A stretch of DNA of 64,000 bases from Octopus bimaculoides (taxonomy: Eukaryota). Shown piece after piece: positions 1,262-62,410 of this stretch. Numbering within the stretch: position 1 is the stretch's first letter; each line of letters begins with the position of its first letter. The DNA is taken from NCBI RefSeq assembly GCF_001194135.2, contig NC_068987.1:184879-248878 (forward strand), given 5' to 3'. The position numbers and the translations under genes were made by a program. The notes under the pieces were generated by a model. That model made no database searches. It was not told the origin of the DNA and saw only the letters and a list, made by a program, of their open reading frames with translations.

Positions 1262-4200
1262 CTGAAAAGGAAAAAACAAACTCATTAAGAAACGAAAATG
1301 AAATCATCACCATGGCAACCACCACCACTATTGTTATATGACTCTATTCATCATCATCATGACGACGACGACCACCACCACCATTCTTTGTTACCATGCA
1401 CTTGACACCACACAACAATATCACTATTTGTCACCATTGTTCAACCTTTCATCTGTGAATACCAGCGTGCAGGGATCTAATTCCTATCTCTCATTAAACA
1501 ACAACAACAACAGCAACCACTTTGTAATCTCATGGACACCTAAACTACCAAGACCCCCATGCATGTCTTATATACTGAATTGCCAACAAGACAACCTGTT
1601 GAGGGCCACTGACCAGATCTGTGGATGGTGCAAAGTCCCCTCTTGACTGAAGATAATATGGTGGTGGGACAATGTAGTTGACAGGGCCATTAAGAAAAAA
1701 AAAACAGGCATGGAAGGACTGGAAGAACGGTGGTAGCAGGGAACTGTATCAGATTGCCAGAAGGGAAGCGAAGCTAGGAGACAGGTTTACTTAGCCAGAG
1801 GGGAAGCAGATAAGAAAAAAACTGCCAATGTTCTGCGTCATGAGGACCAGAGACTTGAAGTGTTTCGAATTGCAAGACAGAGTGTGAGAGAGAATCGTGA
1901 TGTCATTGGAGAGAAATGTGTCTGCATGGATGATGGTTCACTTGCATTTAATGATGCTGCAAAGAGAGAGACTTGGAGATGCTTCTATAAAAGGTTGCTA
2001 ACTGAAGAGAATGAATGGGAGAAAGAGAGTCTGCCAAATGTCAACCCAACAGAGGGACCAACTATCGAAATTGATAGAACCTTGGTAGATAAAGCGATTA
2101 AAAGTATGAAGACAGGGAAAGCCCCGGCCCATCAAAAATCACTGCAGAGATGCTCAAAATATCTGGCAGTGTTGGCTATAGCCTAGTCACCTGTATAGTT
2201 AACCAGGTGATGCATGAAGGACTCATTGCCAATGACTGGTGTTGCAGTACCATAGTCAACTGCTACAAAGGTAAAGGTGACGCTTTAGATACGAATAATT
2301 ACAGAGGTATCAAGTTGTTGGATCAGGTGATGAAAGTCACGAGAGGGTCATAGCCCAATTAATTAGAGAGAGAGTCAGTTTAGATGAGATGCAGTTTGGG
2401 TTCGTGCCTGGGAAAAGCACCACTGATGCTATATTTCTGGTAAGACAGCTGCAGGAGAAATACCTAGCTAAGGATAAACCTCTGTACCTGGCTTTCGTTG
2501 ACATGGAGAAAGCCTTTGACAGGGTCCTCCAATCCCTTATCTGGTGGTCAATACAGAAACTAGAGATAGATAAATAGTTGGTGAGAGCTGTACAAGCCAT
2601 GTACAGGGATGCTGTTCGTTAGGTGAAGGTTGGCAATGAGTACAGTGAAGAATTCCGGGTGGAGGTAGGGGTCCACCAAGAATCAGTCCTCAGCCCCCTC
2701 TTATTCATCATAGCAATAACATCAAGGCAATAACAGAGGAATTCAAGACAGGATGCTCCTGGGAGCATCCAGTTCTCTATGCTGATGACCTTACTCTAAT
2801 AGCTGAGTCACTACCAGGACTAGAGAAGACGTTTCAGGTGTGGAAGCAAGGTCTAGAATCGAAGGGCCTTAGAGTCAACACAGCTAAAACCAAAGTCCTA
2901 ATTAGTAGGAAGGCAGACAAATCACAAACCCCTTCAGGTAGATGGCCCTGCTTGATCTGTAGGAAAGGCACAGGTAGAAACTCTATAAGATGTACCCAGT
3001 GTAAGCTATGGACACATAAGAAGTGCAGTGATATCAAAGGAAGGCCAACTGCGAAGATAGTTTTTGTGTGTGGCAGATGTTCAGGTGCAATAAACATTGA
3101 AAATATGCAGTAAACAGCTTTCATCACATGCCAGGAGAGAAAAATTAGAAGTAGTTGATAGCTTCTGTTACCTTGGTAACCAAATCAATAGTAGGGGTGG
3201 ATACTCTATGAGTGTAGCTGCTAGAATAAGACTAGCCTGGGCAAAGTTCAGAGAGCTCTTACCTCTGCTGGTGACAAAGGGACTCTCGCTCAGAGTAAAA
3301 AGTAGATTGTATGATGCATGTGTGCAAACAGGCATGCTTCATGGCAGTGAAACATGGGCCTTGACTGCTGAGGATATGCGTAGGCTCACAAGGAATGAAG
3401 CCAGTATGCTCCGCTGGATGTGTAATGTCAGTATGCATACATGACAGAGTGTAAGCACCCTGAGAGAAAAGTTGGATTTAATAAGCATCAGTTGTGGTGT
3501 GCAAGAAAGATGACTGCAATGGTACGGTCATGTGGTGAGAATGGATGAGGATAGCTGCGTGAAAAAGTGCCACACCCTTGCGGTTGAGGGATCCTGTGGA
3601 AGAGGTAGACCCAGGAAGAGCTGAGATGAGGTGGTGAAGCACGATCTTCAAGCGTTGGGATTCATGGAGGCAATGATGAGCGACCAAGACCTTTGGAGAT
3701 ATGCTGTGCTTGAGAAGACCTGGCAAGCCAAGTGAGACCATAACCAGCCCATTTAAGAGGACCCTTCAATCATTGGGCAATGAACTGTGCTTGAAAAGAC
3801 CTGTTGAGGCAAGTGAAGTGATTGCCATAGCCAATGCCAGTGCCGCCTGACTGGCTCCTGTGCTGGTGGCACATAAAAAGCACCATTCATGTGTGATCGA
3901 TGCTAGTACTGCTTGACTGGCCCTCATGCCAGTGGCATGTAAAAAGCACCCATTACACTCTCAGAGTTGTTGGCATTAGGAAGGGCATCCAGCTGCAGAA
4001 ACCTTGCCAGATCAGATTGGAGCCTGGTGCAGCCTCCTGGCTTGCCAGTCCTCAGTCAAACCATCCAACCCATGCCAGCATGGAAGGCAGACGTTAAACA
4101 ATGATGATGATGATGATGATGACGATGATTGGGGGAGGGGAGGCTAACACCAGTAAAACAGAGAGTGGGAGGGTCAGTTTTGAAATAGAGAGCTTTGGAC

Positions 4201-5732: not shown

Positions 5733-8700
5733 AGATGGATATAGATATATATACACACACACATACTGAGATGTGTAAACAACTACCAGTATATAAATGT
5801 ATACACACACGTGATTACATCTCCCAATACATAAACATATATATGTATATCCTTGTGAATAAATTTGTTGGATGGAAACTGGTAGAAACCCATCATATGT
5901 GTACGTATGCTGCTGTCTTGACATTACTCGATGGTAGTCAAGAAGCATGACCATCAGCAAAGCAATTCCCGGTGTTGACAAAGGGAAATATTACTTTACT
6001 TGCATACTGGTGAGTGTTGGTAACAGGAAGGACATCCAGCCATAGAGAAATCTGCCTCAACAGATTCCACCTAACCCATGCAAGCATGGAAAAGTGGACA
6101 TTAAAAGATGCTGATGATGGTGAAACACACACACATGATGGGCTTCCCAACAGTTCCCATCAACCAAATTTCCCTCACAAAGCATTGGTCATTCTGATAC
6201 TACAGAGTGGAAGATATGCCAGAAGTGCAAAGTCATTGAGATGGAACCTGAAATCCCAGGATTGTAAAAGAAACTTGTTAACTACACCCACCACACATCT
6301 AATATATATATATCCAAGTTGTAATTATTTGGCAAGTGTCGCACATTCAACATCTGGTTGTCTGATCTGAAACAGCTGTACATTAGAGAGATTATTTCAA
6401 ACATCCATTTAATGTTCGAGTCACTGAGAGACAGAGAGATATTTATATATACTATCCGATCGCAGATAACGAAACATCAAGACGACACTTTGGAGTCATG
6501 GCAGTAATGAAGAGAGAGAAGCAACTCAGGTGAGTTTTACACAGTGACAAAAGGAGGAGAGAAGGGGCAAGCAATAAATTAAATTCATTTAAAGTCAGAT
6601 TAAATTAAGATGAGTTAGAGTCATCATCATTTAACATTTGTTGCCCATACTGGCATCACCAAAGGGCAATTTGACCAGAGCTGACAAGTTGGGGACCTGC
6701 ACCAGACTCCAGTCTCATTAGGCATGGTTTCTATGGCTGAATGCCCTTCCTAACACCAAACACTTTAATTCTGGGTGCTTATGACATAGCACCACACGAG
6801 CACTTTTACATGGTGTCACATGGGCACTTTTACGTGGCACCTCCATGAGTGCTTCACTCAACCAGAAGGACCGGTCTTAACACTTCTGCTGGTGAAACAT
6901 GAGCTGTGATTGCTGAGGATATGTGGTAGGCTTGAAAGAAATGAAGCTACAATGCTTTGCTGGATGTGCAATGTCAGTTGGCATGTATGACATTGTATAA
7001 GGATCTTGAGAGAAAACAATTATGAGGTATGAGATGTGGTGGCGTGAAAGAGATGATTGTGCTGTTATAGGCATGTGATGTGTATAGATGAGGACAGCTG
7101 TGGAAGAGGTAGACCCAGGAAGACATGGAACAAAGTGATCTTCAAATATTGGGTCTCACAGAAGTGATGACAAATGATTGAGACCTTTGGTAATTTGCTG
7201 TGCTTGAGAAGACTCACCAAACCAAGAGAAATCACAGTCGTGGTCAGTGACATGTAAAAGGCAGGCATGCCAGTGCCATGTAAGAGGTCCCCACTACATT
7301 CTTGGAGTTGTTGGTGTTAAGAAGGGCATCCATCCAACAATAGAAACCATGCCAAATCAGACTGGAACCTGTGCAATGCTCTGACTTACCACTTCTAGTC
7401 AAGCCATCTAACAACCCATGCCAGCATGGAAAGTGGATGCTAATGATGATGATGAATATAAACATTATAAAATGTTGAAGCATTTCATCACTGATTTAAG
7501 AACTGTTCCCTAATGGTGCATTTCACATTTCACTGCACTTGGCAAGCAAGCCCACACAAATATCTGCACCCCACCACCTTTATGGGCTTCTCTTGAATCA
7601 TTGGTGTTCTGTCAGATTACCCCTGCAAGGTATCTGATGATGGAGCTCTTTCTGACCCACATTCAATCATGTGGCTTTCTCAAGGGTTTGCTTTTATCCC
7701 CTACACTCTTACTCCAACACAAAGACTTACTTGTCATCTTCTTCAATAACTTGCATTCACATAAATGGCACTCTATTCTTCCCTACCCTTCTACAACTGA
7801 GGTACCTTAAGTTAAATATCTGCATTGACTCCTCAGAAAAAGGTCCTTCAATGGGGGTCATCTCCTTTAACACAAACACACATTGCTGACCCTTTCTGTT
7901 CCCAGGAAACAGGGATCCTCAAAACCAGATTTTCTCAGGGTTCCTACAAATGCAAGGCAACCCCACTTCTGACCCTCAACTTAGAAATCACTCCATCACC
8001 TTTACTGATCTTTCTCTTCCCAATCAGGAAAAAATACTTCATATAATAATCACTGACTTTGCACTAAGTGTTTAGGTGAGGCTCACCAGAGGAGCACTGC
8101 TGCCATATCTGGGATGGTGTTATTGTGACACCCAAACACATATCTAACTGTATCCACAAAACAAAAGGGGACTCAACTGAAATCACTCCCTAATATGCCC
8201 CAGCCTTTGATCCACACAGGTGCTGCACCTCCTTTCTCTGCTTTCCCTGCCACGTCTACAATGGCCCCTGCTCATACCACCCCCAATCTCATCATCTACA
8301 CTATGCCCTCCCCTACCCTGACTCCTATTCACAGTCCTTCCTCTCTATATTCTTGTCTTTCTAGAATCCCCAAAGGTTTTCACAATGCTGATTACACTTG
8401 GTTCTCTAGAGCCATGGCCACCAGCCCTTTCAGACCAGTCCAATAAAAGAAAACCATCCAATTGTTTTCCATTCATGTAAAGACATGTGGGTGAACATGT
8501 ATTTGGAAACATGCATGGTGCACTTGCATGAAACGAGAGTGAATGGTAGTTTGAAATCCTTACCTCTTCACAGATATCCAGTTTACTCTGGGATCGGCCA
8601 AAGATAAGGATGATCCTTACAATATAAGGAGGGGGCAAAGTAGGGTCCTCCATGATGGGAAGTTCACAGTTGCGAAGGCTGAAATGGAGATGAGAAACAA

Positions 8701-11700
8701 GCAAAAGATTAAAGGTAAAGAACAAGAACAACAATAAGTGCCAATGATGGCAGGAGAAGAGGTTAAAGAGATAAGACATTCATTTGCAACAGGTGTACAA
8801 CAGGTGTATTTACACTTCAGTTTTGACATTATCAACCATATCAATATGAACCTAGTCAGTGCAATCAACTTTGTTAGTCAAAGTCAGCTCAGGGTCAATA
8901 TATTTCCTTAAATATACATAGTAAATAGGGGCTAAGCTCCTTTTGGATACTCAAGATGAGTGAGCTGCATCTTTTTAAGAGAGTAAAGAAATGTGAATAA
9001 GCAATATCTTTGTCATTATCTTGAAATACTAAAGAGTAAATTTATTCAATAAAATCGCCAATGGCTCCAACCATGGCCTCCAGACGACTTCCAAATCTCC
9101 TGCAACTCTTCTGGATGGTCTCCTTGCTTAAGTTGGTGAATGCTGCCATAATCCTTGCCTTCAGTTCATCTTTGGTGTTACAAGGAATTTTCTTGGTCTT
9201 TCGCTCAACTGAGCCCCACACACAATAATCAAGGGGGTTGCAGTCTGGTGAGTTAGGTGGCCAGATGTTAGGGGTGATGTGGTTGCAGAAATTGTCTGAC
9301 AGCCATGACTGGGTTCTGTTTGTGTGACACGGTGCAGAGTCCTGTTGCCAGAAATAGGGTCTTCCAGCAGCCACTCTCTTTGACCTAGGGCAGCACTACC
9401 TCCTCCAGGCACTTGATTTAGGCCTCCATGTTGAGTGTGAGGCCGAGTGGGAAGATGAATGTAGGCATAGCATCACCATCACTAGTGATCACTCCAAACA
9501 CCACAATGTTGATTGGATGTTTGATTTTTATCACTCTCGCTACATGTTTTGGGGACACGGCAAGCCAACGCTTGTTCTGTGAGTTCACCATCTGATCGTG
9601 GCAGAAGTTTTTCTCATCTGAGAAAAACCAAAGCATGTTCGGTTGGAGGGGATGCTTGAGTTTGTTCAAAAGCTTTGTAGTGTGGTCTTTCCCCTTGTCC
9701 TTAATGGCTTGGCATAAAAATTGGCTCTTCCTCATCTTGTACGAGGAATACCGAATGTTTTCGTGCCCAACCTGCCTGATAAGAATCTCAGACACTCCCA
9801 TGGCTCTGGACCTTATTGATTTGGAAGGTTCTTTGTTAATCATGGCCTGGATCTCACCAACAACTTCAAGAGTTCTTTTCTTATCAAAATGATCAGAGTG
9901 AGTATTCCGAGCTGCCATACCTTCGTAATTACCATTAGACTCATCAGCTATACTGTCATCAGATTGACACCCAAACACTCTGAAATGTTTGTATTGGAGC
10001 TTCTGGTGCAAATGCCAAGCAGTACAGCGTGTCGTTTCCAGATTTCTAGCAGAGTGAATAGTGTTATGATGCTGTTTTTCTTACAGACAGTGCCCAACTA
10101 ACCCTACTGTACTGTGTAGTCGACAAAATCAGAGACAAACAATGAGCATGCCCAAAATTAGAAATATAAAATAGTAAACAATTTATCCATCGCACCCTGC
10201 ATGTATATATATGTGGATATTTTACACCTGACATACTAAATGCCTGTATAATTTTCAGTAATGTAAGGTGTGACAATGTTTCTCAAATAAAACTTGTAAT
10301 TCATTTACAAAACTTTTTTTATGTTGCCATTCTTTTACAATTCTGCTAGAAATACTCACCGATACCAATGTCTGGTTTGAAAGAAGAATACTTTGCTCCA
10401 TTTGAGGGTGACAACATTTCAGTTGTTGATGTTGAAAGTCTGACAGATGACAATGCAGCTATCACAATTTCATCATCATCATCAATCACAGCTGCATTGT
10501 CATCTATCACAATTTCATCATCATCAGTCAGCTGACAATGCAGCTGTGACTGATGATGATGAAATTGTGATAGATGACAAGATTGAGATTGATGAGATTG
10601 TCAGATCTGAGGAGGAAGCTCGGTATAATTTGATGAACTTCCTTGTGTCAAGCAAATTCACTGAGAAGGTTTTGTCAGTTCAGGACTATAGCAGATGTCA
10701 TTTCTCAGAAGTGAATTGGTCAAGTTTGAAATATGTGAGCAGAAACTAGAATTGAGAAGTCTAAGAATAAACGTAGCAAAGACAAAAGTCACAGGAGAAA
10801 ATTTTTCTGATCTCTACTATCGTCAGGTAAGTGGCCCTTTTTGATGTAAAGGAGAGGTGTAAGCAGGAACTCTATACGAAATAGTGTAAGCAAGAGATGA
10901 AGCGAAATCACAGACTGAGTGAGAAAACATAAATGTGCAAGTGTGGCTAACATTAAGAATACTCATGAAATGAATTCTTTCAAATAACCAAAATACTCTG
11001 TAGAAATAGTAGACAGTCCTTTGTAATGAAGCCTTGTAAAAAAAAAAAAAATGTTACTATTAACATGTTTGGAGTTACAACCTGATGAAAATATTGGTAG
11101 AATATGGCAGAAAGATACAGATTAGACTAGTACTTACATAGTCTTCAGCACGGACCCAACATCAAGATTTGAACACTTGTAAGTTTCATCCAAATTTTCC
11201 AACAAATTTGCAATTTCCCTGGGGTCATTAGTAAAACTGTGGTACTAAAATAGATGAGAAGAAAAGAAATGGTTGAAGAGATGGCATCCCTAAAATCAAT
11301 ATTAGTTTTTTTAATGCAGTGATTGAGAAGAAGGGGTGGCTAGGGTAGTGTTTAACCAGTAGCTCAGCCCCGATCCAGTAAATCTGTTATTAAACATCAA
11401 AGTCAGAATCACACAGCAGAGTTGGATAAAAGTATGGTCCATGAAAACGAAAAAAAATACAAGCTCAGAATGGACTGTCAGAGAGAACACAACCTGTCTA
11501 GACTGGACAACCATAGGAAACATATCCTGTCTAGACTGGACAGCCATAGGAAACATATCCTGTCTAGACTGGACAGCCATAGGAAACATATCCTGTCTAG
11601 ACTGGACATTTGAGAATCTACACGTCGAGATGGTAACATTGTTTCACATACATTTAACCTGACCCCAAAAGGAAAAATCTACATCAGTCATGCACCACAT

Positions 11701-16670: not shown

Positions 16671-17529
16671 TTTGAAAGCTCAGACATTCCAGACTTGACG
16701 TAAATGTCGTGGTGGTCACACTTGCCACTTCTAATATTTGACAAAAGAAATTTCTTCACCGAAATTTTACAAGAGCAAAGGGGAGACAATCAGTGTTTGA
16801 CGAAGAAAAATAATTAAGAAAAGCAAAAAAAAAAAAAAAATTTAGATTTTTTAATAAATAGTTTTAAAGAAATAAATTGAATTTAATGGAGAACAACTTC
16901 ATCTGAAATGAGTTAATGTTTACAATATACACCGGCATGAAAAATCGCCCCCCCCCTCCTTTTTTCCCCTGAAATTTTTTCAGCGAATTCCTGTTTTCGA
17001 TGACGGAGATTCTGAACAGGCCGAAAACCATTTTTACAAAATTTTAAATCCCACCTCCCTACCCTATATTTTTTAAATTTTAACTTTTGTTTTTAATTGT
17101 TTTTTTTTCAATCGACGTGGGAAAATATGGAGATTANNNNNNNNNNNNNNNNNNNNNNNNNNNNNNNNNNNNNNNNNNNNNNNNNNNNNNNNNNNNNNNN
17201 NNNNNNNNNNNNNNNNNNNNNNNNNNNNNNNNNNNNNNNNNNNNNNNNNNNNNNNNNNNNNNNNNNNNNNNNNNNNNNNNNNNNNNNNNNNNNNNNNNNN
17301 NNNNNNNNNNNNNNNNNNNNNNNNNNNNNNNNNNNNNNNNNNNNNNNNNNNNNNNNNNNNATCTGCTCACCTTTCTGCAAAAGTTTCTTTCAGAGTAATT
17401 TCCCGCAGCAATATGACAAAATGAAATGAAAAAGTTAATTTTTTATTTAAAGAAATTCTGGAAATTTTTCTTCGCCGTAAATCCATTCATTTCTCGATAA
17501 ATAGATTCGTCGACGCGAGACCATTTCAT

Positions 17530-20909: not shown

Positions 20910-22138
20910 TGTACCTGGTCACAGGAGTAGTTGTATGGAGTACGAGAAGATGGCTCAGAAGGTGGGAAGCGTCATGAAGTTGTCGCTCGCCAAAGGAATT
21001 ATGGGAAGGATGGAGAAGAAAACGATTACCTATAAGGTGTACTCGTTGAAAGGAAAAAAGGCAGAAGTGGAAAAGACGCTGAGGGAACGTACATAACCAA
21101 AGGAAGAAGATATGGGACAATGGTCGTCCAATTTAGGACAGTAGAGGAGGCTGGCGAGTGTGGCGGTGAAAACAGAGGAGGTAGTGCTTCTGCCCACATA
21201 CCTTGGAAGAAAGACTTCCAAGGTGAGGGTAGAAGTAATTCCACTGGATATAGNNNNNNNNNNNNNNNNNNNNNNNNNNNNNNNNNNNNNNNNNNNNNNN
21301 NNNNNNNNNNNNNNNNNNNNNNNNNNNNNNNNNNNNNNNNNNNNNNNNNNNNNNNNNNNNNNNNNNNNNNNNNNNNNNNNNNNNNNNNNNNNNNNNNNNN
21401 NNNNNNNNNNNNNNNNNNNNNNNNNNNNNNNNNNNNNNNNNNNNNNNNNNNNNNNNNNNNNNNNNNNNNNNNNNNNNNNNNNNNNNNNNNNNNNNNNNNN
21501 NNNNNNNNNNNNNNNNNNNNNNNNNNNNNNNNNNNNNNNNNNNNNNNNNNNNNNNNNNNNNNNNNNNNNNNNNNNNNNNNNNNNNNNNNNNNNNNNNNNN
21601 NNNNNNNNNNNNNNNNNNNNNNNNNNNNNNNNNNNNNNNNNNNNNNNNNNNNNNNNNNNNNNNNNNNNNNNNNNNNNNNNNNNNNNNNNNNNNNNNNNNN
21701 NNNNNNNNNNNNNNNNNNNNNNNNNNNNNNNNNNNNNNNNNNNNNNNNNNNNNNNNNNNNNNNNNNNNNNNNNNNNNNNNNNNNNNNNNNNNNNNNNNNN
21801 NNNNNNNNNNNNNNNNNNNNNNNNNNNNNNNAATTTAGAAGACCCTCCCTCCCGGTGAAAAAGGTTACGAATGCATGGCGGAGAGAATGGTGTCACTAAA
21901 TGATGGAGAAAGGGGAAAAAGGATTGGACTGAAGGAGAAAAAGCAGTTCGGACCCAGAGGTGGCGAGTGGTGTTACTCAGTGTGGGGTGAGTAGCACACT
22001 CTTCGTAATATCATTTTCAGATATCATATTTTAATTTGTTATTCGTTATATCATATTTTATTTTTATATTTTTAATTGTTATATGTCCCCACATGTGTTG
22101 TAGTGTCCCTTTCTGGCAATTCTAAAAGAAATAAAGAA
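20910..22138 (+). mobile_element. Decayed ORF1-like (RRM/gag-type) retroelement copy, interrupted by an N-gap
   Basis: YITKGRRYGTMVVQFRTVEEA aligns with YITRGRRYATVEVQFTTEEEA of the 32930-34194 element; similar gtgtccc...aataaa 3' end. Confidence 0.65.
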
Positions 22139-23136: not shown

Positions 23137-23375
23137 AGTCGTGAGTGGTCGATCCTAACCCTAACCCTAAACACGTATTCATTTGCACACGCGGGTTAGG
23201 GATAGGGTTAGGGATAGGGTTAGGGTTAGGGACAGGGTGAGGGGACAGGGTTGGGGTTAGGGACAGGGTTAGGGATAGGGGACAGGGTTGGGGTTAGGGA
23301 CAGGGTTAGGGTTAGGGACAGGGTTAGGGACAGGGTTAGGGATAGGGTTAGGGTTAGGATCGACCACTCACGACT
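23137..23375. repeat. Foldback element: perfect 32-bp inverted repeats enclosing a degenerate telomeric (TTAGGG/ACAGGG/ATAGGG) array
   Basis: 23137-23168 agtcgtgagtggtcgatcctaaccctaaccct is the exact reverse complement of 23344-23375. Confidence 0.92.
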
Positions 23376-24411
23376 AGCTAGCGCGGACGCGCNNNNNNNN
23401 NNNNNNNNNNNNNNNNNNNNNNNNNNNNNNNNNNNNNNNNNNNNTCTCATAAGTGTCAGAAAAACGGATATTTTTAAATAAAATTTTCTGCAAAAATCTT
23501 TCAGATTCGTTAGTTTACGAAAAGAGAGAGAAAAAATGGCGGATGGTCACTGTGACACACTTATGTTGCAAAATGAAATTTGAAGTTATGTAAGAATTAG
23601 TACCCGCCGAGCACTTTTTTTTTTTTTTGCATTAAAGTTCAGTATAATTGCAATTTTCACCATTTAAAAATATCCATTTTTATGAAAATTACGAGGAAAC
23701 AAATTCGAATGAGGTGGACGACACACGTTTATAGTTACTTCGGGTGTTTTATATACGTTGTATGTTTCGATCAATTTGATATCTTGGTCAAACATCAGAA
23801 GTGTAAATAAATGATATAACACACTTCTCTCAGATTTATATTCAAAGAAATCTTCCGAAAACCAAATTGCATTATATTCATCCCAATTTTTGTAAATATT
23901 GTTTTATAGGTCACCATCTGACATAAAAACTAATTTTCGACGGTATTCGAGAAATTCCTGTAAATAACTGCCAAATCATGCACGAGAATAAAGAAAAGGA
24001 CTCAGGCCTTAAATAAAGATTGTTTAGAGGTATTAAGATGGTAAAGTACGGTGAAGAAGAAGAATAACAAAAAGCATTCAATTCTATGATTCTGTTTATT
24101 TAATGCACGTTTGTAGCGGAAAATATATATGGCCATCACCAAATGCATCAATATATATATATATTTAAAAATATAGCATATTTAATGAATCGAACAAAGC
24201 TTATAATCATTTTAACAATTACATATAAAAAAAATAAATGGAAAATATATTTATCTTTTTAGCAATTTAAGTTTTCAGTAAAATATGTAAAAATTTACGT
24301 TTACGCCTTCTTAATGTTGCATGCTTGTGTGTGAAAGGGAAAAGCATAGAATTTGTCAAGATGAAAAAGTACTTTACTCTCTTTTAAGGAGCCTGTTCTA
24401 TGTATAATAAA

Positions 24412-25182
24412 CTACATTTGATTAGCTGGAGGCTCAAACTTGAGTTTTTTAGTTAACGTCGACATAATGCAAGGCATTTGTTTGCATTCTTTGAAATCAG
24501 GCGCCTTATCGCTTTCAAATTTCTTCGCAGCAACATGCTTAGAAACAGCTGTTAAAAGTATCATCATTTCGTATGTGGTGCCATATTTTATCAGAATTTT
24601 ACTTAGGATGTTAAAAAACCACGACCCTTCATCTTCATTTTTAAAAGACGAATAATCAGGACACGATGAAAAGTAAAGCAGCGTATCTTCCTCAAGTCGA
24701 TATTTTGAAACTAGTTCCTCGTTTGCATTAACTTTCTGCTGGTCATCAACATTTATATCAATCTTACTTCCTCGCGATGCTTCCACAAAAATCAATTTAG
24801 GTACTCCGATTAAAGATGAACATCTATCGGCCTTCAGATAAGAAAGCAAATCGTGAACCTCTGCCACATCCGCACATTCAGGCTTCGTTTCATCACTTTT
24901 CATAATTACACACAAAATGCAATCAATATCTTTGATATTAAACTCTTTAGAGACCTCACACATTTCTTCGAATGTGTGTACTTTGATATCTGTTTCATTA
25001 AATCCAAGTACTCCTAAGGCATTTCGAATGTTTTCTACTTCTTTTTGGAACGGTCCATCCTTGAAAATGTAGGCTACTCTTCTCTTTTTTTGTGTCATAA
25101 CATAATTATCGAAATATTTCTTTATATCTTCCGCGGTTAATTTGTTTATAGGCATTTTCGAAGAGCCAGTCTTGAAAGACAT
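24412..25182 (-). CDS. Caspase-3/7-like pseudo-protease 1 (intronless, no prodomain, catalytic His and Cys absent), 256 aa
   Basis: DCILCVIMKS (canonical VLLSHG), DRCSSLIGVPKLIFVEASRG (canonical QACRG), GSWFF, KQMPCIMSTLTKKL. Uninterrupted ORF. Confidence 0.88.
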   Translation of the reverse strand: MSFKTGSSKMPINKLTAEDIKKYFDNYVMTQKKRRVAYIFKDGPFQKEVENIRNALGVLGFNETDIKVHTFEEMCEVSKEFNIKDIDCILCVIMKSDETKPECADVAEVHDLLSYLKADRCSSLIGVPKLIFVEASRGSKIDINVDDQQKVNANEELVSKYRLEEDTLLYFSSCPDYSSFKNEDEGSWFFNILSKILIKYGTTYEMMILLTAVSKHVAAKKFESDKAPDFKECKQMPCIMSTLTKKLKFEPPANQM

Positions 25183-25428
25183 ATTGACTTTATCACATAA
25201 GCCAAACTGTACTTCCTGGTAATCAGCAGTTTCTCTCAGCTCACGTCATTTACACAAAGGCAAATTTCAATAAATCCATTTCCTTCGTTTTGAAAGATAT
25301 GTATCGAATATTTCATGTATTTCCAAAGTTCAAAATCAGTTTAAGACTCAGATGTGTGAGTAGTAATCATTTTAGGATTTTGGTCCCTTTTTGTGAATTA
25401 CCAGCAAACAATCGGAGATAGGGCACAC

Positions 25429-26523: not shown

Positions 26524-27255
26524 CTAATTACGTTCAAATTTCAGTTGCTTCGTTAACGTTGACATAATATAGGGTATTTGTTCACGGCCTCTGGTTTCCT
26601 CTTTAATACAGTTAGAAACAGCTGCCAAAATTGTCATAATATCATACGTGTTACCATATTCTTCCAGAACTTGCTTTAAAAATTGCATAAAATATGAGCT
26701 TCTTGTGCTATTATTGTCAGACGCACAAACGATGAGCATATCTGCAGTGCGTGGAATTGTATGCTCTTCTTCAAATCCAAAGCGGTCAGCATCGCATTTT
26801 TCGATAGCATTTTCGTCCTTCGAACAAGGAGTTGTTACTACAAAAATTAATTTGGGTTTACCTTTTAAAGATGGCACTTTTCTAAGTATTTCATTTAACG
26901 ATATAACACTGTCGTATGTTCGGATATAATTTCCTGGGTGCATATAACTTAGAAATGCACAAACAAAGCAATCCACGTCACGATCCTGAAACACTTCATC
27001 AAACTTTGATATTTCACTGGTTGACATATCAGTGTATTCAGTGATATTATCTGCCAGAAATCCAAGCCTTATTAATGCCTGTTTCAATAAATCTTTGTCT
27101 TGGGACGAAGCATCACGAGTTCCGTTGTTAGCGAAATTCGCATTGCTGAAAATATGGGCGAAACTGTTTTTTGTCGGCATTGGATCGTAATAACTATAAA
27201 AGCCCATAACATCTTCCTCCGCCGCCATGTTTAAACGTTTCACCGATGCACACAA
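26524..27255 (-). CDS. Caspase-like pseudo-protease 2 (intronless, no prodomain); likely start at the second ATG, 27228 (234 aa)
   Basis: TRDASSQD, DCFVCAFLSYMH, SLKGKPKLIFVVTTPC, ADMLI, EQIPYIMSTLTKQLKF; aaacATGG context at 27228. Confidence 0.85.
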   Translation of the reverse strand: MCASVKRLNMAAEEDVMGFYSYYDPMPTKNSFAHIFSNANFANNGTRDASSQDKDLLKQALIRLGFLADNITEYTDMSTSEISKFDEVFQDRDVDCFVCAFLSYMHPGNYIRTYDSVISLNEILRKVPSLKGKPKLIFVVTTPCSKDENAIEKCDADRFGFEEEHTIPRTADMLIVCASDNNSTRSSYFMQFLKQVLEEYGNTYDIMTILAAVSNCIKEETRGREQIPYIMSTLTKQLKFERN

Positions 27256-28005
27256 TTGAGGTCGTCACCCGCAACGGATTAGTATCAGTCAAATAATTGT
27301 TTCGAATTCTGACAGCAAAGCCAGCAACGTTAAGGATCTAGGGTGTAGTCCGTTACATGGATTCCAGTGCTTAAACGGTACTTTTTTTTTATCACCCTCG
27401 GAAGGACGAAAAGTACAGTTAAAATGGACAGAATTTGAACTCAAAACATAAAGAGCCGGAAGTACTTCCGCTATGTATTTTGCCTGACGTAATAACAATT
27501 CTACCAGATGACCATGCTAAAGAGGTACATTCAACCATTCTTTCACAGAGTGTGTATATAAGTACCAGTTGAGCACTGGGGGGGGGGATGTCGTCGATGT
27601 AATCGACTTAACTACTCCTGTATAGGAGTATAAAGATTGCACACCTCTGCCAAGCCAACGTCAGAGAGAAGGCTCATTAGCACAGTATGAATGTCGAGCT
27701 CAAATTCACAGCCCCCACGTCAGACCTTCGGTCGAGTGAACATACTGAAGCCCTTGCCCTGCAGTGATCGGAACATGGGCGTCTCCCCAAGTGTACCAAC
27801 CCTTAATTTTGTTTCCCTATGTTCTTGAAAATAGATATTTTTTCAGGAAATTTTCTAGAAATCAGCTTCAGATGAGGTAGATTTCGTTTATAATACAATT
27901 TGTTGTGAAAAAGATTCTTCCGTGGGTGAAATTTGTTACAGACACCTTTCAGAGTGTGTAAATTACGATTCTATTTGAATCTGATGTGTGTAAACGGAAA
28001 CGGTG

Positions 28006-30639: not shown

Positions 30640-32190
30640 TCATCGTCATTTAATGTCTGCTTTCTATGCTGGCATGGGTTGGACAGTTTGACTAAGAACT
30701 GGCATGCCAGGAGGCTGCACCAGGCTCCAATCTGATCTGGCAAGGTTTCTACAGCTGGATGCCCTTCCTAGTGCCAACCACTCTGAGAGTGTAGTGTGTG
30801 CATTTTGTGTGCCACTGGCACTGACTACACTCTGATGGTGCTTTTTATGTGCCTCCAGCATAGGAGCCAGTCAGGCAGCACTGGTATCAGCCATGCTCAA
30901 GTGGTGCTTTTTTACATTGCACTGGCATTGGCTACAACTACAATTTCATTCAGTTCAACAGGTCTTCTCAAACACAACATATTTCCCGACGATTGAAGAG
31001 TGCTTTTAAATGGGCCAGTTATGCAATACTAGCATTGGCCACAGCTACGATCTCACTTGGCTTGCCAGGTCTTCTCAAGCACAGCATATCGCCAAGGGTC
31101 TTGGCTGCTTATCATTGACTCTGAGGCCCAACATTTGAAGGTTGTATTTCACCACCGCTTCCCATGTCTTCCTGGGTCTACCTCTTCCACAGGTTCCCTC
31201 CACTGTTAAGGTGTGACACTTCACACAGCTGTCCTCATCCATATGTAACACATGACCATACCAGCACAATCGTCTCTCTTGCACACCAGATTTGATGCTT
31301 CTTATGTCAAACTTTTTTCTCAGGGTACTTACACTCTGTTGTATATGCACACTGAAATTACACATCCAGTGAAGCATACTAGCTTCATTTCTTGCAAGCT
31401 TACACATGTCCTCAACAGTCACAGCCCATGTTTCACTGCCATGTAGCATGACTGTTTGCATACATGCGTCATACAGTCTACCTTTCACCCTGAGCGAGAG
31501 ACTCTTTGTTACTAGCAGAGGTAGGAGTTCCCTGAACTTTGCTCAGGCTATTCTTATTCTAATGGCAATGCTCTCAGAGCATCTACCCCCATTACAGACT
31601 TGGTCATCTAGGTAACAGAAGCTATCAACTACTTCTATTTTTTTCCCCCTAGCATGTGACGGAAGCTGTTTTCTGCACATTTTCAGTGTTTATTGCACCT
31701 GTGCACATTTGCCACACACAAAAACTATCTTCCAGTTAGCCTTCCTTTGATATTGCTGCACCTCATGTCCATAGCTTATACCAGGTACATCTTATGGAGT
31801 TTCTACCTACACCCTTTCTACAGATCGAGCAGGGCCATCTACCTGAAGGGGTTTGTGATTTGTCTACCTTCCTATTTATTAAGACTTAGGTTTTTGCTAT
31901 GTTGACTCTAAGGCCCTTCAATTTTAGACCTTGCTTCCACACCTGAAACTTCTCTAGTTCAGGTAGTGACTCAGCTATTAGAGCAAGGTCATTAGCATAG
32001 AGGAGCTCCCAGAGGCAGTCTGTCTTGAATTCTTCTGTGATTGCCTGGAGGACTTTGGTGAATAAGAGGGGCTGAGAACTGATCCTTGGTGAAGCACTAC
32101 TTCTACCTGGAATTCTTCACTATACTTGTTGCCACCCTCACCTTACTGACAGCGTCCCTGTACATGGCTTGTACAACTCTCTCACCAACC
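30640..32190 (-). mobile_element. Decayed RTE LINE 3' half with tail
   Basis: ORF MKGRLYDACMQTVMLHGSETWAVT...GRGRPRKTWE; reverse-complement tail at 30640-30960. Confidence 0.9.
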
Positions 32191-39109: not shown

Positions 39110-42100
39110 GCACGGTTTATTTGCGATCAGAGTTGTTCAGCAACTGAGGTGCTACTGTATATATAATGGGCACTCATGTACCCACGCATTCCACCTTCCC
39201 ATTATAACAGGGTTTCTTAATCACCACCATCTTCTGCATAACCTCATTACACCCCACCTTTTTTTGCTGTTTACAGTTGGTGCATGTCTGTCTTCTATGT
39301 CTTCTCATTGTTGTTATTAGATTTTAATGACTCTAAATATATTATTTTCAGTTCGTTACCAGATTGAGATCTTCCGTAACCTGCGCCATGTCAATATTGA
39401 CCATCTCCATGTTGGTTGGTACCAGAGTACATATTTTAATTCCTTCATCAATCGTACTCTTGTCGACTCCCAGTATAACTACCAACACTCCATTGAAGAG
39501 TCAGTTGTGCTTATTTATGGTGAGTCATTATTCATGTTTTTTTATTTATTGTTTTTCAATTTCTACCACTCACAGAAATTTCTAGGGTTTTCATAAGCAG
39601 CTGATGATTTCAGCTGAGCTGGACCCTTCCTTTTAGACCCTACCCCCACCCCTTCCAAAGCACTAGTAACCTTGAACTCTTTACTGTGACTACCGTTATT
39701 TTGTGTTCCTGCTGTAGAAATTGCTGTTTGCTCCAGTTCAGCAAACTGGAAACAGTTTTTGTGGCTAGTGATAAGAAGGGCCAACACAATGATGCATCCT
39801 GGTCATGATAATTAGCTGTAAAAATGACCCCAGGCTAACTGCGATCAAGGTGGACTTGTGTGATTCATAAATCTAATAAACTGGTTATGTCTTTGTTTGA
39901 GATCATATTTTTTATGACTTAATTTAGGAAGGGAATGAGATCACGACTTTTGTTTTAGGGTCTCTGTGACAGGTGGGAGAAAAGAAAGAATATAAACTTC
40001 TTGTGAGCACTTGGTCATGGTAGGCACCCTGAGGAGGTGGTAGGGTTAACAAGAACAGTCCCTCTAACAGGCTTTCCGACAGATTCCTTCGACCAAATTC
40101 TGCTGAGGAGGTTTTGTCAAGGCTATAGTAAAAGACAAGCTACCGTGCTGTGTGATTTATAATTACATGGTTCATCATCATCATCATCATCGTTTAACGT
40201 CTGCCTTTCATGCTGGAATGGGTTGGACGATTTGACAGGAACTGGTCAGAACTGCACCAGACTTTTGTGTCTGTTTTGGCAAGGATTTTACAGCTGGATG
40301 CCCTTCCAAACACCAACCACTTTACAGTGTGGACTGGGTGCTTTTAAGTGGCACCTGCACTGACAGGGTCACCAAGTCTTTGCAAGACGAAGAACTACTT
40401 TCAAGTTTGGTGGAGCCCTGGTGAACCCCTACCTGTACACTGAATTTATCACTGTATTCATGGCTGACTCCCACCTTACTGACAACACCTCTCTGCATGG
40501 CTTGTACAGCTCTAGAAAGCCACTCCTCTACTTCTACCTTCCTTAGAGACCACCATATAACACAGTGGGGGACTCTGTCGAAAGCTTTTCCCAGGTTGAC
40601 GAAGGGTCAGTACAATGACTTACTTTTGGTCAAGTACTTTTCATGCAGTTGTCGCATTGGGAAGATGGCATCTGTGGTACTCTTCCCAGACACAAAACGA
40701 AACTGCATCTCATCTAGTTTAATTCTATTCCTAATCAATTGAGCTATAACTCTCTCAGTAACTTTCTTGACTTTGTCTAGCAATTTAATACTTCTGCAGT
40801 TGTTTCTATTTGTATTAGCTCTACACCATCTACTGCCCAGCTCTGTACCATATTTGCCCTTTATCACATAGCTAGCTCTCTATATCTCTACCCCCCCCCC
40901 CCTATTTCTGATGTNNNNNNNNNNCTCTACCCCCCCCCCCCTATTTCTGATGTAACTGCTTGCTAACTTTAGTTCCTCCTTCTCCTCTGCTGCCACCACC
41001 AACATCAACCTGCAGCAGCAGCCTACTTTCTGTGCTGTTATGGGTTGGACAGATTGTCACAATCTAAGTCAGTTCTTATTTCGAGTCACTGTCCTTCAAA
41101 ACGTGTCAAGGACCTCATCCCAAAGTTTCTATGTTGATATCTCACCAGCTCAACCCCAAACCCTGACTGAAGCAGTTTAAACTAAAACTATTTTTTTTGT
41201 TTTGAAATTTTCCTTAGATCCCCTGAAAACCTCTCAAGGGTTTTTATCCCTGAAAGCGTACCGTCTCACTGATGCCATGATGGAGTTTTACAGGGAAGGT
41301 GAATTCACCCCTGAATCAGTGAACAGGCTGAAGCTAAACTTTGAAAACATGTTTACTGAGATTCCCCTCGTTATCAAGAATTCTCATCTTGTTAATGTGC
41401 TTTTGTATGAACTTGAACAGAAGAAAAACAATGGAGAAAACTACCAATTTCTAGATTTGGCTACAAGGTATGACACTTGTTTATATTTAACTTTTTTCTT
41501 TGCGTGTGTGTGTGTGTGCTTGTATGTTATTTAGATCCTCAAATGTAGAAGCTCTCTGAACTTTGCCCAAGCTGTTCGTATTCTAGCGACTTCCTCCACT
41601 ACTGCTAACTTGGTCACCTAGGTAACAAAAGCTATCTACTGCTTCTAAGATTTCCCTGAGCATTTGAGGCAGTCTATTGTCTGCTCATATTGTACCTGCT
41701 CACTTGCCACACACAAAGACACTATTCTCAGTTAACTTTCCTGTGACATTGCTACACCTCTTATGTATCCAAAGCTTGCACTGGGTACAATGGGTGGAGT
41801 TTCCACCAACACCCTTCTCACATATTGAACAGGGTCATCTCCTGAAGAGATTTGTGATTTGTCTATTTTCCTACTTACTAGGGCTTTGGCTTTTGATAAA
41901 TTAACTCTAAGGCTCTTAGATACCAAGCCTTGCTTCCACATCTGAAATTTCTTCTCTCGCTCAGTTTGTGATTCAGCTATAAGAACAAGGTCATCAGCAT
42001 AAAGGAGCTCCCAGGGACAGCCGATCTCGAATTCTACTGTTAAGGCCTGGAGGACTAAGATAAACAAGAACTGAACCTTGGTGAACCCCTACCTGTACAG

Positions 42101-45761: not shown

Positions 45762-45810
<49 letters not shown>

Positions 45811-47329
45811 NNNNNNNNNNNNNNNNNNNNNNNNNNNNNNNNNNNNNNNNNNNNNNNNNNNNNNNNNNNNNNNNNNNNNNNNNNNNNNNNNNNNNNNNNN
45901 NNNNNNNNNNNNNNNNNNNNNNNNNNNNNNNNNNNNNNNNNNNNNNNNNNNNNNNNNNNNNNNNNNNNNCCGAAAACCTTCCATATCTTGCCTCGATTCA
46001 GTGTGTAGTATATATATATATGTATATATATAAAACCTATGCCAAAGAAAATGGGCATTAAATGATGATATACATTTGTATGCACATATATACATGTATA
46101 TATATATAAATTGTAAATCCAAAAAATAACAACAAAACTACAAAGGATTCCGCGGTACACGTGTTTCAAGCTTTACATGTGTATAATATAATATGTGTAT
46201 AATTTACAATGTAAAGCTATCCTCAGCCGCAAAATTATTCCTCTCCCAGGAAATTATACCACCTTGGCGTTGAAGTAGGAAGAAAGGTGTGATGTAAGAG
46301 GTGAAGATCCTTTCGGTATTCTGTATAGTACTATATCTGGTATAATTCTCCACCCGGACATAATCTCTCCGGTCCTCCGAAAACCTTCCATATCTTGCCT
46401 CGATTCAGTGTGTAGTATATATATATATGTATATATATATATGTATGTGTATATATATATATATGCATGTGTATGTGTCTATGTATGTATGTATATATAT
46501 ATGTAAACACGTCTATATATATGTGTCTGTGTGTGTCATCATCATCATTGTTGTTTAACATCTACTTTCCATGCTGGCATGGGTTGGATGGTTTGACTGG
46601 CAAGGTTTCTACATCTGGATGCCCTTCCTAATGCCAACCACTCTGAGAGTGTAGTGGGTGCTTTTACATGCCACCGGCACGAGGGCCAGTCAGGTGGTAC
46701 TGGCATTGACCATGCTCGAGTGGTGCTTTTTACATGCCACTGGCACGGGAACCAGTCAAGCAGCATTGATAATGGTCACTTGTCATCACCTCTGTGAGGC
46801 CCAGCGTTCAAAGATCGTGCTTCACCACCTCAGCCCAGGTCTTGCTGGGTCTACCTCTTCCACAGGCTCCCTCTACTGCTAGGGTGTGACACTTTTTCAC
46901 ACACCTGTCCTCATCCATATGCAACACATGACCATACCAGAATATGCCAACTCTGAGGGTGTGGAAGGTGTGGGCCTGTGAGACGTACATACATCATCAT
47001 TGTTTGTATGTAGATATATGTATGTATATATATATATATATATATATATNNNNNNNNNNNNNNNNNNNNNNNNNNNNNNNNNNNNNNNNNNNNNNNNNNN
47101 NNNNNNNNNNNNNNNNNNNNNNNNNNNNNNNNNNNNNNNNNNNNNNNNNNNNNNNNNNNNNNNNNNNNNNNNNNNNNNNNNNNNNNNNNNNNNNNNNNNN
47201 NNNNNNNNNNNNNNNNNNNNNNNNNNNNNNNNNNNNNNNNNNNNNNNNNNNNNNNNCACACACCCCCAGAACCACGCTAATAGCTTAGGAGGGAAATTTA
47301 GAATTTCTCGTTTTATTGTGAATCGATTT

Positions 47330-52690: not shown

Positions 52691-53447
52691 AAAGCTATAC
52701 CAGCAGACACTGAAGCTGCCTAGTTGCAGTATTGAACCTGAGATCACCTTAGTGGAAATCAAATTTGTTTAAGCTGCAGTCCATGCCCTTTGCTTTTCAT
52801 TAAAAGATAAAGTAGTAGCGATATGCTGAGGTCTATGTTATTAATAAGAGGAGTTGGGGCATAGTTTGCTCGTTGCGAGGAAAAGAAGTCGTTATAATTG
52901 CTGTAAAAAAATGATGAGGAAACCAGCAGATCTGTGAACCAGTGGTTGGTGTTATATACGAATTGCTGTAGCTCTTTTTTTTTTTTTCAATTTAGTCTGG
53001 GTTGTGTATGTGTGGGTAACGGCGCCATCGTTTATATGTAAAATGCCCGTCAAGCTCACAGGCTGCAGCCTTGGAAGCATTCCGTTAGAGCACTTCTGTC
53101 GAACTGAATGCTTCCCATTCATTTACAGAGAACAGCCCCCGCCATCTAGCGACAAATGGGAGGTAACTTAATGTAAACAATGCGTGAGTAAGTGTTGCCA
53201 TGTGAACAAGAGGAGATAAGTGGAGGCGAAAAGTGAGTTGTGAGAGGTGGTTGGTGAGGTGAGGGGCAGGGAGGGCCACGAATCTCTCACATTCAGAAAC
53301 AGTTTGCGTGTCCGATAACAACAAAAGTTGTGAGAGGCCTCTGCCGTCTCCGTCGCTCTACTTTGTCGATTTTGTAAACTTTTAAACTCTTCTCCCCCCC
53401 CCCCCAACTCATGTTAAACCTTGTTTGCCAACAAATTAATTGCAAAA

Positions 53448-54467
53448 ATGACGAACTTACCAACAAACTTACGAACTTCCAAACATGTCTTTTACATAGT
53501 TTTGTTCATTATAGCTATTTATTTTCTCGTTATGGATATTATTCTCTACGTTACACTACAGAACAATGTACTCTGCGAAAAGAATGACGGCATGTACTCT
53601 CCCTTCCGTCCTCTAACTGTGAAACTTCTGATGACCGACCCCTTCGACCACTGGATTACGAGTCCACTCATGGAATACTTTGATGAACTCACCGGATTCA
53701 GCGATATTTTTTATTTCATTACTCCAAACATGATCAGTATTTTCCACATGTGCCTCACTATATTGGCTGGTAAACTGGTCAGTTCACCTTCCTTACACAC
53801 CCGCCGGATTGCTGTGTTAGTCTTTCAGATGCACGGTCTGTTGGACACGCTTGATGGAATAGTTTACCGTGCACGAACAGGTAAAGGGCATTTATTTCAA
53901 TCGCATCGCTCTACTGTGGGTTACGTTATCGACGGTGCGTGTGATACTATTGGTGGAACGGCGCTCTGTATAGGACTGGCTGTTAATTTGTGTCGTAATC
54001 CTCCGTCTAAAAGACAGCAAAATACCTTACCTTGGACAAAAACTGACCTGCTGATGGACAGTCCAAACGGGGCTGCTACAACTACTGAAAAACAAAATGG
54101 ACATGTGAGCAAATTCACGGCTTTTTTTCGTTGCTTTTCATTTGGTATGCAATTACTTCTGGCGGCTGCCATGTGGGACAAAAGTGTAGCCAGACTCTCA
54201 GCTATCCTTCAAGTCCCCATAAAAGATTCCTCTCTAGCTGCTCTTCAGGTAGAATCGTTACACTCTGCCAGTACATCTATTATATTTCTGTTGTGGCGAT
54301 ATTCTTCAGCCATAGCTTTACTTCAGATGGTTTTGTTTGCTATTTTTATAGATAAAGTCTGGGAATTCCTGACATTCATCCTTTACATCGGCTGGCCCGT
54401 CTTGATTGCTGTGATTTTCGTTACTGAACTCCACATAAGAGCTTTACGAGAGAAAATGCACATGTAA
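53448..54467 (+). CDS. CPES: Ceramide phosphoethanolamine synthase (CPES)-type CDP-alcohol phosphotransferase, intronless CDS, about 339 aa
   Basis: FLVMDIILY, TVKLLMTDPFDHWITSPL, FITPNMISIFH, LAGKLVSS..RRIAVLVFQ, LDTLDGIVYRAR..GYVIDGACD, DKVWEFL, VTELHI match the Drosophila Cpes pattern as I recall it. First ATG (aaaaATGA) at 53448. Confidence 0.9.
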   Translation: MTNLPTNLRTSKHVFYIVLFIIAIYFLVMDIILYVTLQNNVLCEKNDGMYSPFRPLTVKLLMTDPFDHWITSPLMEYFDELTGFSDIFYFITPNMISIFHMCLTILAGKLVSSPSLHTRRIAVLVFQMHGLLDTLDGIVYRARTGKGHLFQSHRSTVGYVIDGACDTIGGTALCIGLAVNLCRNPPSKRQQNTLPWTKTDLLMDSPNGAATTTEKQNGHVSKFTAFFRCFSFGMQLLLAAAMWDKSVARLSAILQVPIKDSSLAALQVESLHSASTSIIFLLWRYSSAIALLQMVLFAIFIDKVWEFLTFILYIGWPVLIAVIFVTELHIRALREKMHM

Positions 54468-62143: not shown

Positions 62144-62224
<81 letters not shown>

Positions 62225-62410
62225 NNNNNNNNNNNNNNNNNNNNNNNNNNNNNNNNNNNNNNNNNNNNNNNNNNNNNNNNNNNNNNNNNNNNNNNNNNNN
62301 NNNNNNNNNNNNNNNNNNNNNNNNNNNNNNNNNNNNNNNNNNNNNNNNNNNNNNNNNNNNNNNNNNNNNNNNNNNNNNNNNNNNNNNNNNNNNNNNNNNN
62401 NNNNNNNNNN

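Follow-up and report, generated by a model that had tools for sequence, protein, structure and literature searches.

Caspase homologues that have lost catalytic competence (pseudo-caspases) are few, and FLIP(L), CASPS18 and CSP-3 have each been informative on how activation thresholds are set. Here we describe a candidate from octopods, the product of a gene, hereafter g1, that occupies positions 24412..25182 on the minus strand of a 64,000-nucleotide stretch of the Octopus bimaculoides genome (hereafter the window; NCBI RefSeq assembly GCF_001194135.2, contig NC_068987.1, positions 184,879 to 248,878) and encodes, in a single exon, an apparently dead effector-type caspase homologue of 256 amino acids. 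FLIP(L), which like g1 combines a caspase fold with the absence of both catalytic residues, Cys and His, forms a heterodimer with an active relative and inhibits or promotes its activation depending on dose (PMC7586951). It is, however, an initiator-type paralogue of caspase-8 that is recruited to the death-inducing signalling complex by its two death effector domains (DEDs), whereas g1 is prodomain-less and effector-like; g1 may work like FLIP(L) but falls outside the FLIP family. In Aedes, the decoy CASPS18 enhances CASPS19 (Bryant 2010, via PMC4840389). CASPS18 resembles g1 in being an effector-type, lineage-specific paralogue with no long prodomain and no catalytic residues, placed by local duplication beside a paralogue; it is not itself apoptotic and is thought to modulate the active paralogue. 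The two differ in phylum and have independent origins, the neighbour of CASPS18 (CASPS19) is active whereas that of g1 is degenerate, and g1 additionally lacks both arginines of the S1 pocket and the linker Asp.

Two further comparisons are instructive. CSP-3 and CSP-2 of Caenorhabditis elegans are, like g1, caspase homologues with no working active site; they have been reported to restrain CED-3, but the in vivo anti-apoptotic roles of both were not reproduced by another laboratory (PMC3591282). This stands as a warning against assuming that a pseudo-caspase has a function. CSP-3 is essentially small-subunit-only; in g1 the two subunits are both present, within a single chain. Among molluscs, the Cg3/7-like caspases of bivalves are likewise effector-like and occur as tandem, lineage-specific copies in which the His and/or Cys is unconserved, a feature noted without functional work (Vogeler et al. 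2021, PMC7836458); they belong to another molluscan class and a separate expansion, and the octopod coding sequences (CDSs) are single-exon. Judged by its residues, g1 would be classed as a decoy or pseudo-caspase paralogue, being effector-like, having lost the catalytic residues and apparently being kept as a gene, with the caveat that the ratio of nonsynonymous to synonymous substitution rates (dN/dS, or omega) is about 1 in the closest species pair. It thereby adds one more to the pseudo-caspases and caspase-like decoys already described.

The g1 open reading frame (ORF) runs uninterrupted from an ATG start through 256 codons to a TAG stop at 24412-24414. Its product matches the Pfam family Peptidase_C14 (PF00656) with an E-value of 4.8e-29 over residues 47-247, so that both the p20 and the p10 parts are covered, and among solved structures it comes closest by sequence (HMMER against the PDB) to human caspase-7 and caspase-3, at about 2e-27. 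No Pfam family other than Peptidase_C14 exceeds its cut-off, and strand beta1 is reached after just 33 residues or so, which leaves no long prodomain; no DED match was obtained in the Pfam scan, and the N-terminus is too short for tandem DEDs. An AlphaFold2 (AF2) model built from a 91-sequence alignment has a mean predicted local distance difference test (pLDDT) score of 87.6 and a predicted template modelling score (pTM) of 0.85, with weak zones at the N-terminus and at residues 101-110 and 141-160; a run with a 10-sequence alignment, which gave a pLDDT of 52, was set aside in its favour. A Foldseek search of the PDB with this model returned exclusively caspase-7, -6 and -3 or Sf-caspase-1 of Spodoptera among the top 50 matches (E down to 3.5e-20, template modelling (TM) scores 0.65-0.81, the best being 0.7-0.8). 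The scaffold is thus of the effector (executioner) subtype, as the original prediction, made from the letters of the window, had proposed. The structural output comprised confidence values and secondary structure without coordinates, and the geometry of the S1 pocket was therefore read from alignments.

Four alignments bear on the active site: a 12-sequence alignment including human caspase-3 (A1; the caspase-3 sequence is identical to PDB 7xn4_A over 1-277), the independently made 91-sequence alignment (A5), an alternative family alignment (fam) and the HMMER alignment to caspase-7. The A5 columns that contain H, G, Q, C and R in at least 90% of sequences correspond to g1 positions 96, 97, 134, 136 and 181. 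At the catalytic His position (H121 of caspase-3), codon 96 (24895..24897, minus strand) is AGT, encoding Ser, according to HMMER, A1 and A5. The fam alignment places a three-residue gap over this position, and the residue 'at' His is to that extent alignment-dependent; the tripeptide KSD of the window is replaced by KNV and KRD in the orthologues (Ser, Asn and Arg, respectively), and no His occurs anywhere in the former His loop of g1 or of any orthologue. The QACRG pentapeptide around the nucleophile is replaced by EASRG (residues 134-138; 24769..24783, minus strand), with Glu134 at the position of the S1 glutamine (Q161 of caspase-3; A1, fam and A5 agree) and Ser136 at that of the catalytic Cys. 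Ser136 is encoded by TCG (24775-24777), two nucleotide changes away from TGC or TGT, and EASRG is identical across all g1 orthologues, the Ser codons being TCG, TCG and TCC.

The remainder of the S1 pocket has fared no better. A 12-residue deletion between Gln46 and Lys47 (25042..25047, minus strand; A1, fam and A5), common to all g1 orthologues, takes out the first S1 arginine (R64 of caspase-3), which lies in the segment 'ETRHGSSKD' in intact paralogues. The motif SWR, which carries the second S1 arginine (R207), is replaced by SFK (residues 179-181; 24640..24648, minus strand), and the R207 position is occupied by Lys in the window and by Asn or Asp in the other two of three orthologues. 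Hence none of the five residues on which caspase chemistry and S1 specificity depend (R64, H121, Q161, C163 and R207, numbered as in caspase-3) survives in g1, each having been either deleted or replaced. The motifs on which the original prediction relied are indeed present, namely KSD (95-97), DRCSSLIG (119-126), PKLIF (128-132), EASRG (134-138), DINVDD (142-147), SFK (179-181), GSWF (186-189) and KQMPCIMSTL (234-243), and its mapping of Ser96 and Ser136 to the dyad is upheld by HMMER, A1 and A5, fam gapping the former. We add three losses to those it listed: the deletion of the R64 segment, the change of Q161 to Glu and the loss of the canonical P1 Asp of the linker. Its view that the dyad loss is fixed is borne out as well, because the loss recurs in the g1 orthologues of three further octopods, namely O. 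vulgaris, O. sinensis and one other species, and sequencing error as the source of the g1 replacements is ruled out by their presence in four genomes. The protein is very probably catalytically dead; from these residues, it would be unable to perform Cys/His catalysis or to hold a P1 Asp, with the fold kept.

The nearest proteins to g1 are all from Octopus. In an HMMER search of 1.8 billion representative sequences that gave 1718 caspase-like matches, only two belong to the g1 clade: P0006 from O. vulgaris and P0002, from the Logan assembly of SRR11869385. Intact orthologous ORFs are located at 9974-10687 of the O. vulgaris locus L001 (OX597820.1), at 8308-9018 of the O. sinensis locus L007 (CM016865.1) and at 148-903 of L002, a Logan contig from the third octopod. 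The possibility that L002 is a transcript was rejected: a poly(A) tail is missing, and the sequence on either side of the ORF agrees with the window save for one insertion, which identifies the contig as genomic. In O. vulgaris a second caspase-like gene precedes the g1 orthologue, 1.5 kb upstream of it, and the order and orientation of the two genes are those of the window, the tandem pair and its flanks being collinear between the two species; the same pair, with the second gene (g2) followed by an intact g1, occurs in O. sinensis. Synonymous divergence of g1 between the window and O. vulgaris (dS 0.18-0.21) is comparable to that of two other family members in the same pair of species (0.16-0.21).

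Most likely g1 is a coding gene retained by selection, with constraint that is weak and uneven; we base this on its stop-free ORFs, on the rarity and in-frame nature of its insertions and deletions (indels), and on a near-invariant upstream block. The ORFs were checked in four genomes, and the rate estimates rest on three independent lineages. When neutral substitution was simulated at the observed levels, the ORF stayed stop-free in 0.3-1.6% of trials (P 0.003-0.016). Indels in the CDSs of g1 and g2 number 4-7 per kb and seven of eight are multiples of three, the sole out-of-frame event being a gap of 2 bp, right at the 3' end, that brings an earlier stop in O. vulgaris; adjacent non-coding sequence shows a density of 19 per kb, and there only 6 of 30 preserve the frame by length. 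The difference in frame is significant whether the 2-bp event is left out or counted (Fisher P 1.7e-4 and 9e-4, respectively), as is that in frequency (Poisson P 1.7e-5). Against the third octopod, used as the outgroup, g1 has a dN/dS of 0.47-0.58, and the bootstrap intervals do not reach 1. In an alignment of three species the start codons coincide, and EASRG, the beta strands and the segment KQMPCIMS.LTK..KF are invariant among orthologues. The upstream block, TGACGTGAGCTGAGAGAAACTGCTGATTACCAGGAAGT (25211..25248, minus strand), is a putative core promoter or 5' end that comprises a CRE-like (cAMP response element) TGACGT at 25243-25248 and an ETS-like CCAGGAAGT at 25211-25219, and so the minus-strand motifs noticed in the original prediction do exist, 29-66 bp upstream of the g1 ATG. 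Its 38 nucleotides are identical at 34-36 positions (89-95%) in three species, compared with just 75-83% identity in the CDS (alignment A2).

What such a protein might do is suggested by its best-preserved part. Residues 234-249 (KQMPCIMSTLTKKLKF; 24436..24483, minus strand) comprise the end of loop L4, strand beta6 and the C-terminus, that is, the dimer-interface strand of caspases; in caspase-3 and -7 this beta6 stretch forms the dimer interface. In alignment A4, query positions 235-249 contain 9 invariant columns out of 15, versus 23 of about 241 (about 10%) elsewhere; the stretch is the best-conserved part of the octopod family, being invariant in A1 and kept in three g1 orthologues. Conservation of beta6 is a general feature of caspases and not heterodimer-specific evidence. 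Potential partners that look intact (P0007/P0165, P0003 and P0011) are present in the same genomes. We regard it as an evenly balanced proposition that g1 is a functional pseudo-caspase gene, whose product has kept the effector fold, lost catalysis and P1 Asp binding and been retained in octopods. Such a protein would act through protein-protein contacts, most likely by pairing via the beta6 strand with intact paralogues of the same octopod family and thereby raising or lowering their activation, as FLIP(L) does for caspase-8 and CASPS18 for CASPS19; within the heterodimer it would stay single-chain, because the canonical linker Asp has been lost. By analogy with those proteins a dominant-negative or modulatory role through dimerisation is plausible, and this specific mechanism, in which g1 is a modulator of heterodimers, is one that we put forward tentatively, at somewhat less than an even chance.

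The main competing explanation casts g1 as a rapidly evolving decoy or sponge for caspase inhibitors, either inhibitor of apoptosis proteins (IAPs) or pathogen-encoded ones, or for pathogen proteases. It would account for the quick change of the surface loops and for the repeated birth of dead paralogues, of which there are at least four independent lineages (see below). The dN of g1 is 0.19, about twice the 0.09-0.12 of other members at the same dS, and its changes cluster in the active-site loops, where dN is 0.30 as opposed to 0.13 in the fold core and omega reaches 1.11 in the closest pair. Omega is high throughout the family (0.45-0.77, one intact pair included), g1 being the fastest member, and in molluscs both caspase and IAP families have expanded and been linked to immunity (PMC7836458; PMC8917759). 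On the other hand, omega is never significantly above 1, the species being too few for site tests, and most inhibitors that bind caspases use the active-site cleft or the neo-N-terminus exposed by linker cleavage, neither of which g1 possesses. We therefore consider a decoy role rather unlikely, if still the strongest competitor of the functional pseudo-caspase.

Several observations weigh against a retained, functional g1 and would suit a non-functional relic, a neutrally drifting ORF that happens to be still unbroken. Between the window and O. vulgaris, dN/dS is 0.90 by the NG86 method and 1.14 by YN00 (bootstrap 0.57-1.49), and CDS identity (0.83) is not above that of the flank (0.86); at the level of substitutions this pair of g1 sequences is indistinguishable from neutral. 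In O. sinensis g1 has no gene model of its own and falls within the stretch annotated as g2, the only annotated product in O. vulgaris (CAI9725199, 'isoform X2') is chimeric, its caspase part being joined by splicing to a retrotransposon gag, the Logan contig from the third octopod is genomic and not cDNA, and the g1 accessions, like those of g2, were not found in the supplements of the O. vulgaris skin-mucus proteome. A paralogous Cys-to-Ser member, A0A7E6FHF5 of the P0005 cluster, is listed among the caspase-domain proteins of O. vulgaris skin mucus, and therefore at least one degenerate member is made as protein. A relic is nevertheless difficult to reconcile with intact ORFs in four genomes and three divergent lineages, given a probability of about 0.01 per pairwise path that no stop would arise under neutrality, or with coding indels that, unlike those in the flanks, are rare and in-frame (P about 1e-4 to 1e-5). 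The outgroup omega, the kept start codon and upstream block, and the combination of invariant EASRG and core strands with drifting loops point the same way, and we regard the relic as improbable.

The original prediction had also suggested that g1 may still be cleaved or bind substrates, as a substrate trap. In such a scenario the protein would bind Asp-containing substrates or be cut by initiator caspases, and it is true that the fold is kept, that Cys has been exchanged for Ser, a nearly isosteric residue also used in trapping mutants made in the laboratory, and that the intersubunit linker of the window sequence does contain Asp, in DINVDD (residues 142-147; 24742..24759, minus strand; model pLDDT 62-69). 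A trap, however, needs an intact S1 pocket, and this part of the prediction is not supported, the pocket having lost both arginines and gained an acidic Glu in place of the neutral Gln. Regulated cleavage is unlikely because the Asp residues of DINVDD, and the other linker Asp residues of g1, are unconserved among orthologues. In the paralogues the maturation site is VEKxD|A; the corresponding g1 position reads Q/P/S in A1 or D/T/I in fam, a conserved Asp thus being absent from the orthologues whichever alignment is used, and the equivalent site IEKCD|AD is kept by g2 and not by g1. A substrate trap or cleavable decoy is accordingly very unlikely. The idea that g1 switched to a serine nucleophile, to which the invariance of Ser136 and EASRG in g1 orthologues and the recurrence of EASRG in the P0004/P0005 clade might lend some appeal, is scarcely credible, as no conserved His or other general base exists at or near the dyad (S/N/R), the S1 pocket is lost and Cys-to-Ser caspase mutants serve as inactive controls.

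The gene belongs to an octopod family of which all members retrieved, intact ones included, have a single-exon CDS. We compared the members by neighbour-joining and by tabulating the residues at their catalytic positions. The intact-looking members, which keep SHG, QACRG and S-x-R, are P0007/P0165, P0003, P0011 and P0014, and four degenerate lineages are separately supported in the tree: g1 (bootstrap 100, placed inside an octopod-only clade), g2, P0004/P0005/P0161 and P0008/P0164. In the P0004/P0005/P0161 lineage His and R64 are kept, Cys has become Ser and R207 Gly or Ile, and EASRG recurs in its P0004/P0005 clade; in P0008/P0164, R64 has become Cys, His Cys or Tyr and R207 Glu or Gly, with QACRG kept. 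An origin of g1 as a retro-pseudogene was rejected, since the whole family is single-exon and collinearity between species extends over the tandem pair and its flanks. Public databases label these octopod proteins 'caspase-1-like', 'caspase-7' or 'caspase-3-like'. A search of the literature found no paper describing the octopod caspase set, and surveys of squid and lophotrochozoan caspases do not include it.

The neighbour g2 (26524..27228, minus strand), with g1 just downstream of it, is a single-exon, independently degenerate caspase homologue that has Tyr in place of His and VTTPC or VTTPR in place of QACRG and that lacks the SWR loop, but still has R64 and the IEKCD|AD site in its linker. 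Its orthologues are P0010 in O. vulgaris and P0159/P0160 in O. sinensis, with order and orientation unchanged, and its dN/dS is 0.56-0.67. A cut at IEKCD|AD would leave g2 with an Ala-first neo-N-terminus (ADRF) resembling an IAP-binding motif; that g2 might be a cleavable IAP sponge is pure speculation. A second tandem pair of degenerate genes is found on another O. vulgaris chromosome (L006, OX597832.1; CAI9736556 and CAI9736557), where P0161 (Cys to Ser, R207 to Ile) adjoins P0008 (Cys in place of both R64 and His, Glu in place of R207); in O. sinensis the orthologues of this pair, XP_036367180 to XP_036367185, are consecutive too. In addition, P0013, P0015, P0016, P0017 and P0019 are long invertebrate models with two or three caspase domains, one intact and another degenerate, domain 1 of P0013 displaying TSG and EASKG, that is, the g1-like changes of His to Ser, Gln to Glu and Cys to Ser. 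Such multi-domain models may be true proteins or fused tandem genes.

Further conserved elements flank the two genes. The block TGACGTGAGCTGAGAGAAACTGCTGATTACCAGGAAGT is unique within the window, and paralogues, intact ones included, have a similar TACC(A/C)GGAA shortly upstream of the ATG. A palindromic double ETS-like site, CGGAAGTACTTCCGG (27456..27470, minus strand), lies about 230 bp upstream of the g2 ATG and is kept in O. vulgaris. The motif CMGGAAGT has two matches in the 64-kb window versus 3.0 expected by chance, one being upstream of g1 and the other in CGGAAGTACTTCCGG upstream of g2. Motifs this short mean little in isolation; they gain weight from the conservation of the 38-nucleotide block around the g1 pair and from this placement of the only two matches. 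Downstream of g1, identity to O. vulgaris is 0.90-0.97 across 24342-24400, and two blocks, CAAATTCTATGCTTTTCCCTTTCACACACAAGCATGCAAC ... AAACTTAAATTGCTAAAAAGATAAATATATTTTCCATT (24235..24356, minus strand), 55-180 bp past the stop codon, are kept in three species as putative elements of a 3' untranslated region (UTR). In the third octopod the blocks are still conserved despite an insertion of about 230 bp between them and the stop codon (L002, about 930-1160), which may be SINE-like (short interspersed nuclear element). This arrangement fits an upstream block that is a putative real proximal promoter or 5' end and 3' blocks that belong to a putative 3' UTR.

The annotated transcripts deserve some comment. 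In O. sinensis, RefSeq LOC115213954, the g2 orthologue with isoforms X1 and X2, spans 16.8 kb (L007, 6001-22824) and covers the g1 ORF, which may be transcribed there by read-through from g2 or may have been missed by annotation. The donor of the O. vulgaris chimera is a GT within the Gly-Ser-Lys codons straight after EASRG (GGAA|GTAAG), present also in the window at about 24765-24773, and its acceptor is an AG inside the gag ORF of a long terminal repeat (LTR) retroelement about 7 kb downstream (L001, 9974-10400 and 17211-17876). The window contains no homologue of the gag part of this p20-gag chimera, and the chimera is therefore tied to a retrotransposon inserted in O. vulgaris. Supplement file 9 of PMC11431876 contains a zinc-knuckle stretch of gag that matches the O. 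vulgaris chimera exactly at its C-terminus; O. bimaculoides thus has a comparable model in which caspase and gag are fused.

Elsewhere in the window, an ORF fragment at 41202-41534 (plus strand) corresponds to the C-terminal region of eIF3h (Pfam PF19445, 8.5e-38) and is presumably one eIF3h exon, and a 348-amino-acid ORF at 53421-54467 (plus strand), with a CDP-alcohol phosphatidyltransferase domain barely above the cut-off (PF01066, 5.5e-5) and several hydrophobic stretches, may be another single-exon gene. Transposon debris occurs at 9042-10011, 31075-31488 and 41732-42067 (minus strand) and at 3097-3444 (plus strand); two neighbouring debris ORFs look Tc1/mariner-like by eye without a Pfam match, and three fragments with MLHGSETWA are reverse-transcriptase tails of the long interspersed nuclear element (LINE) type, a weak RVT_1 match being obtained in 41732-42067 only. 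Runs of N, usually beside microsatellites (CT/GA, AT-rich), are found for example at 17100-17430, 21200-21830, 23290-23350, 45800-45960, 46950-47260, 59480-59740 and 62220-62400, and none of them touches the CDS of g1 or g2.

The presence of the family matters in a practical sense, as under the current 'caspase' labels the apoptotic repertoire of cephalopods will be miscounted and their transcriptome and proteome matches misread. Beyond this, one small family provides a graded natural series, from intact members through those with only Cys changed to Ser and those with His lost to members in which the whole S1 pocket and the linker site are gone, and with orthologues at hand in several sequenced octopuses, the parts of a caspase that non-catalytic regulation requires become a practical question. 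It is conceivable, if doubtful, that octopods possess a single-exon effector-caspase family in which competence was lost at least four separate times, the dead copies, all kept as ORFs and quick to evolve, often standing in tandem pairs on different chromosomes, and which forms a tunable network of dead and live subunits or a set of inhibitor decoys. If so, such a network could set apoptotic or immune thresholds in cephalopods, and g1 would be its most diverged member, neither binding Asp nor cleavable.

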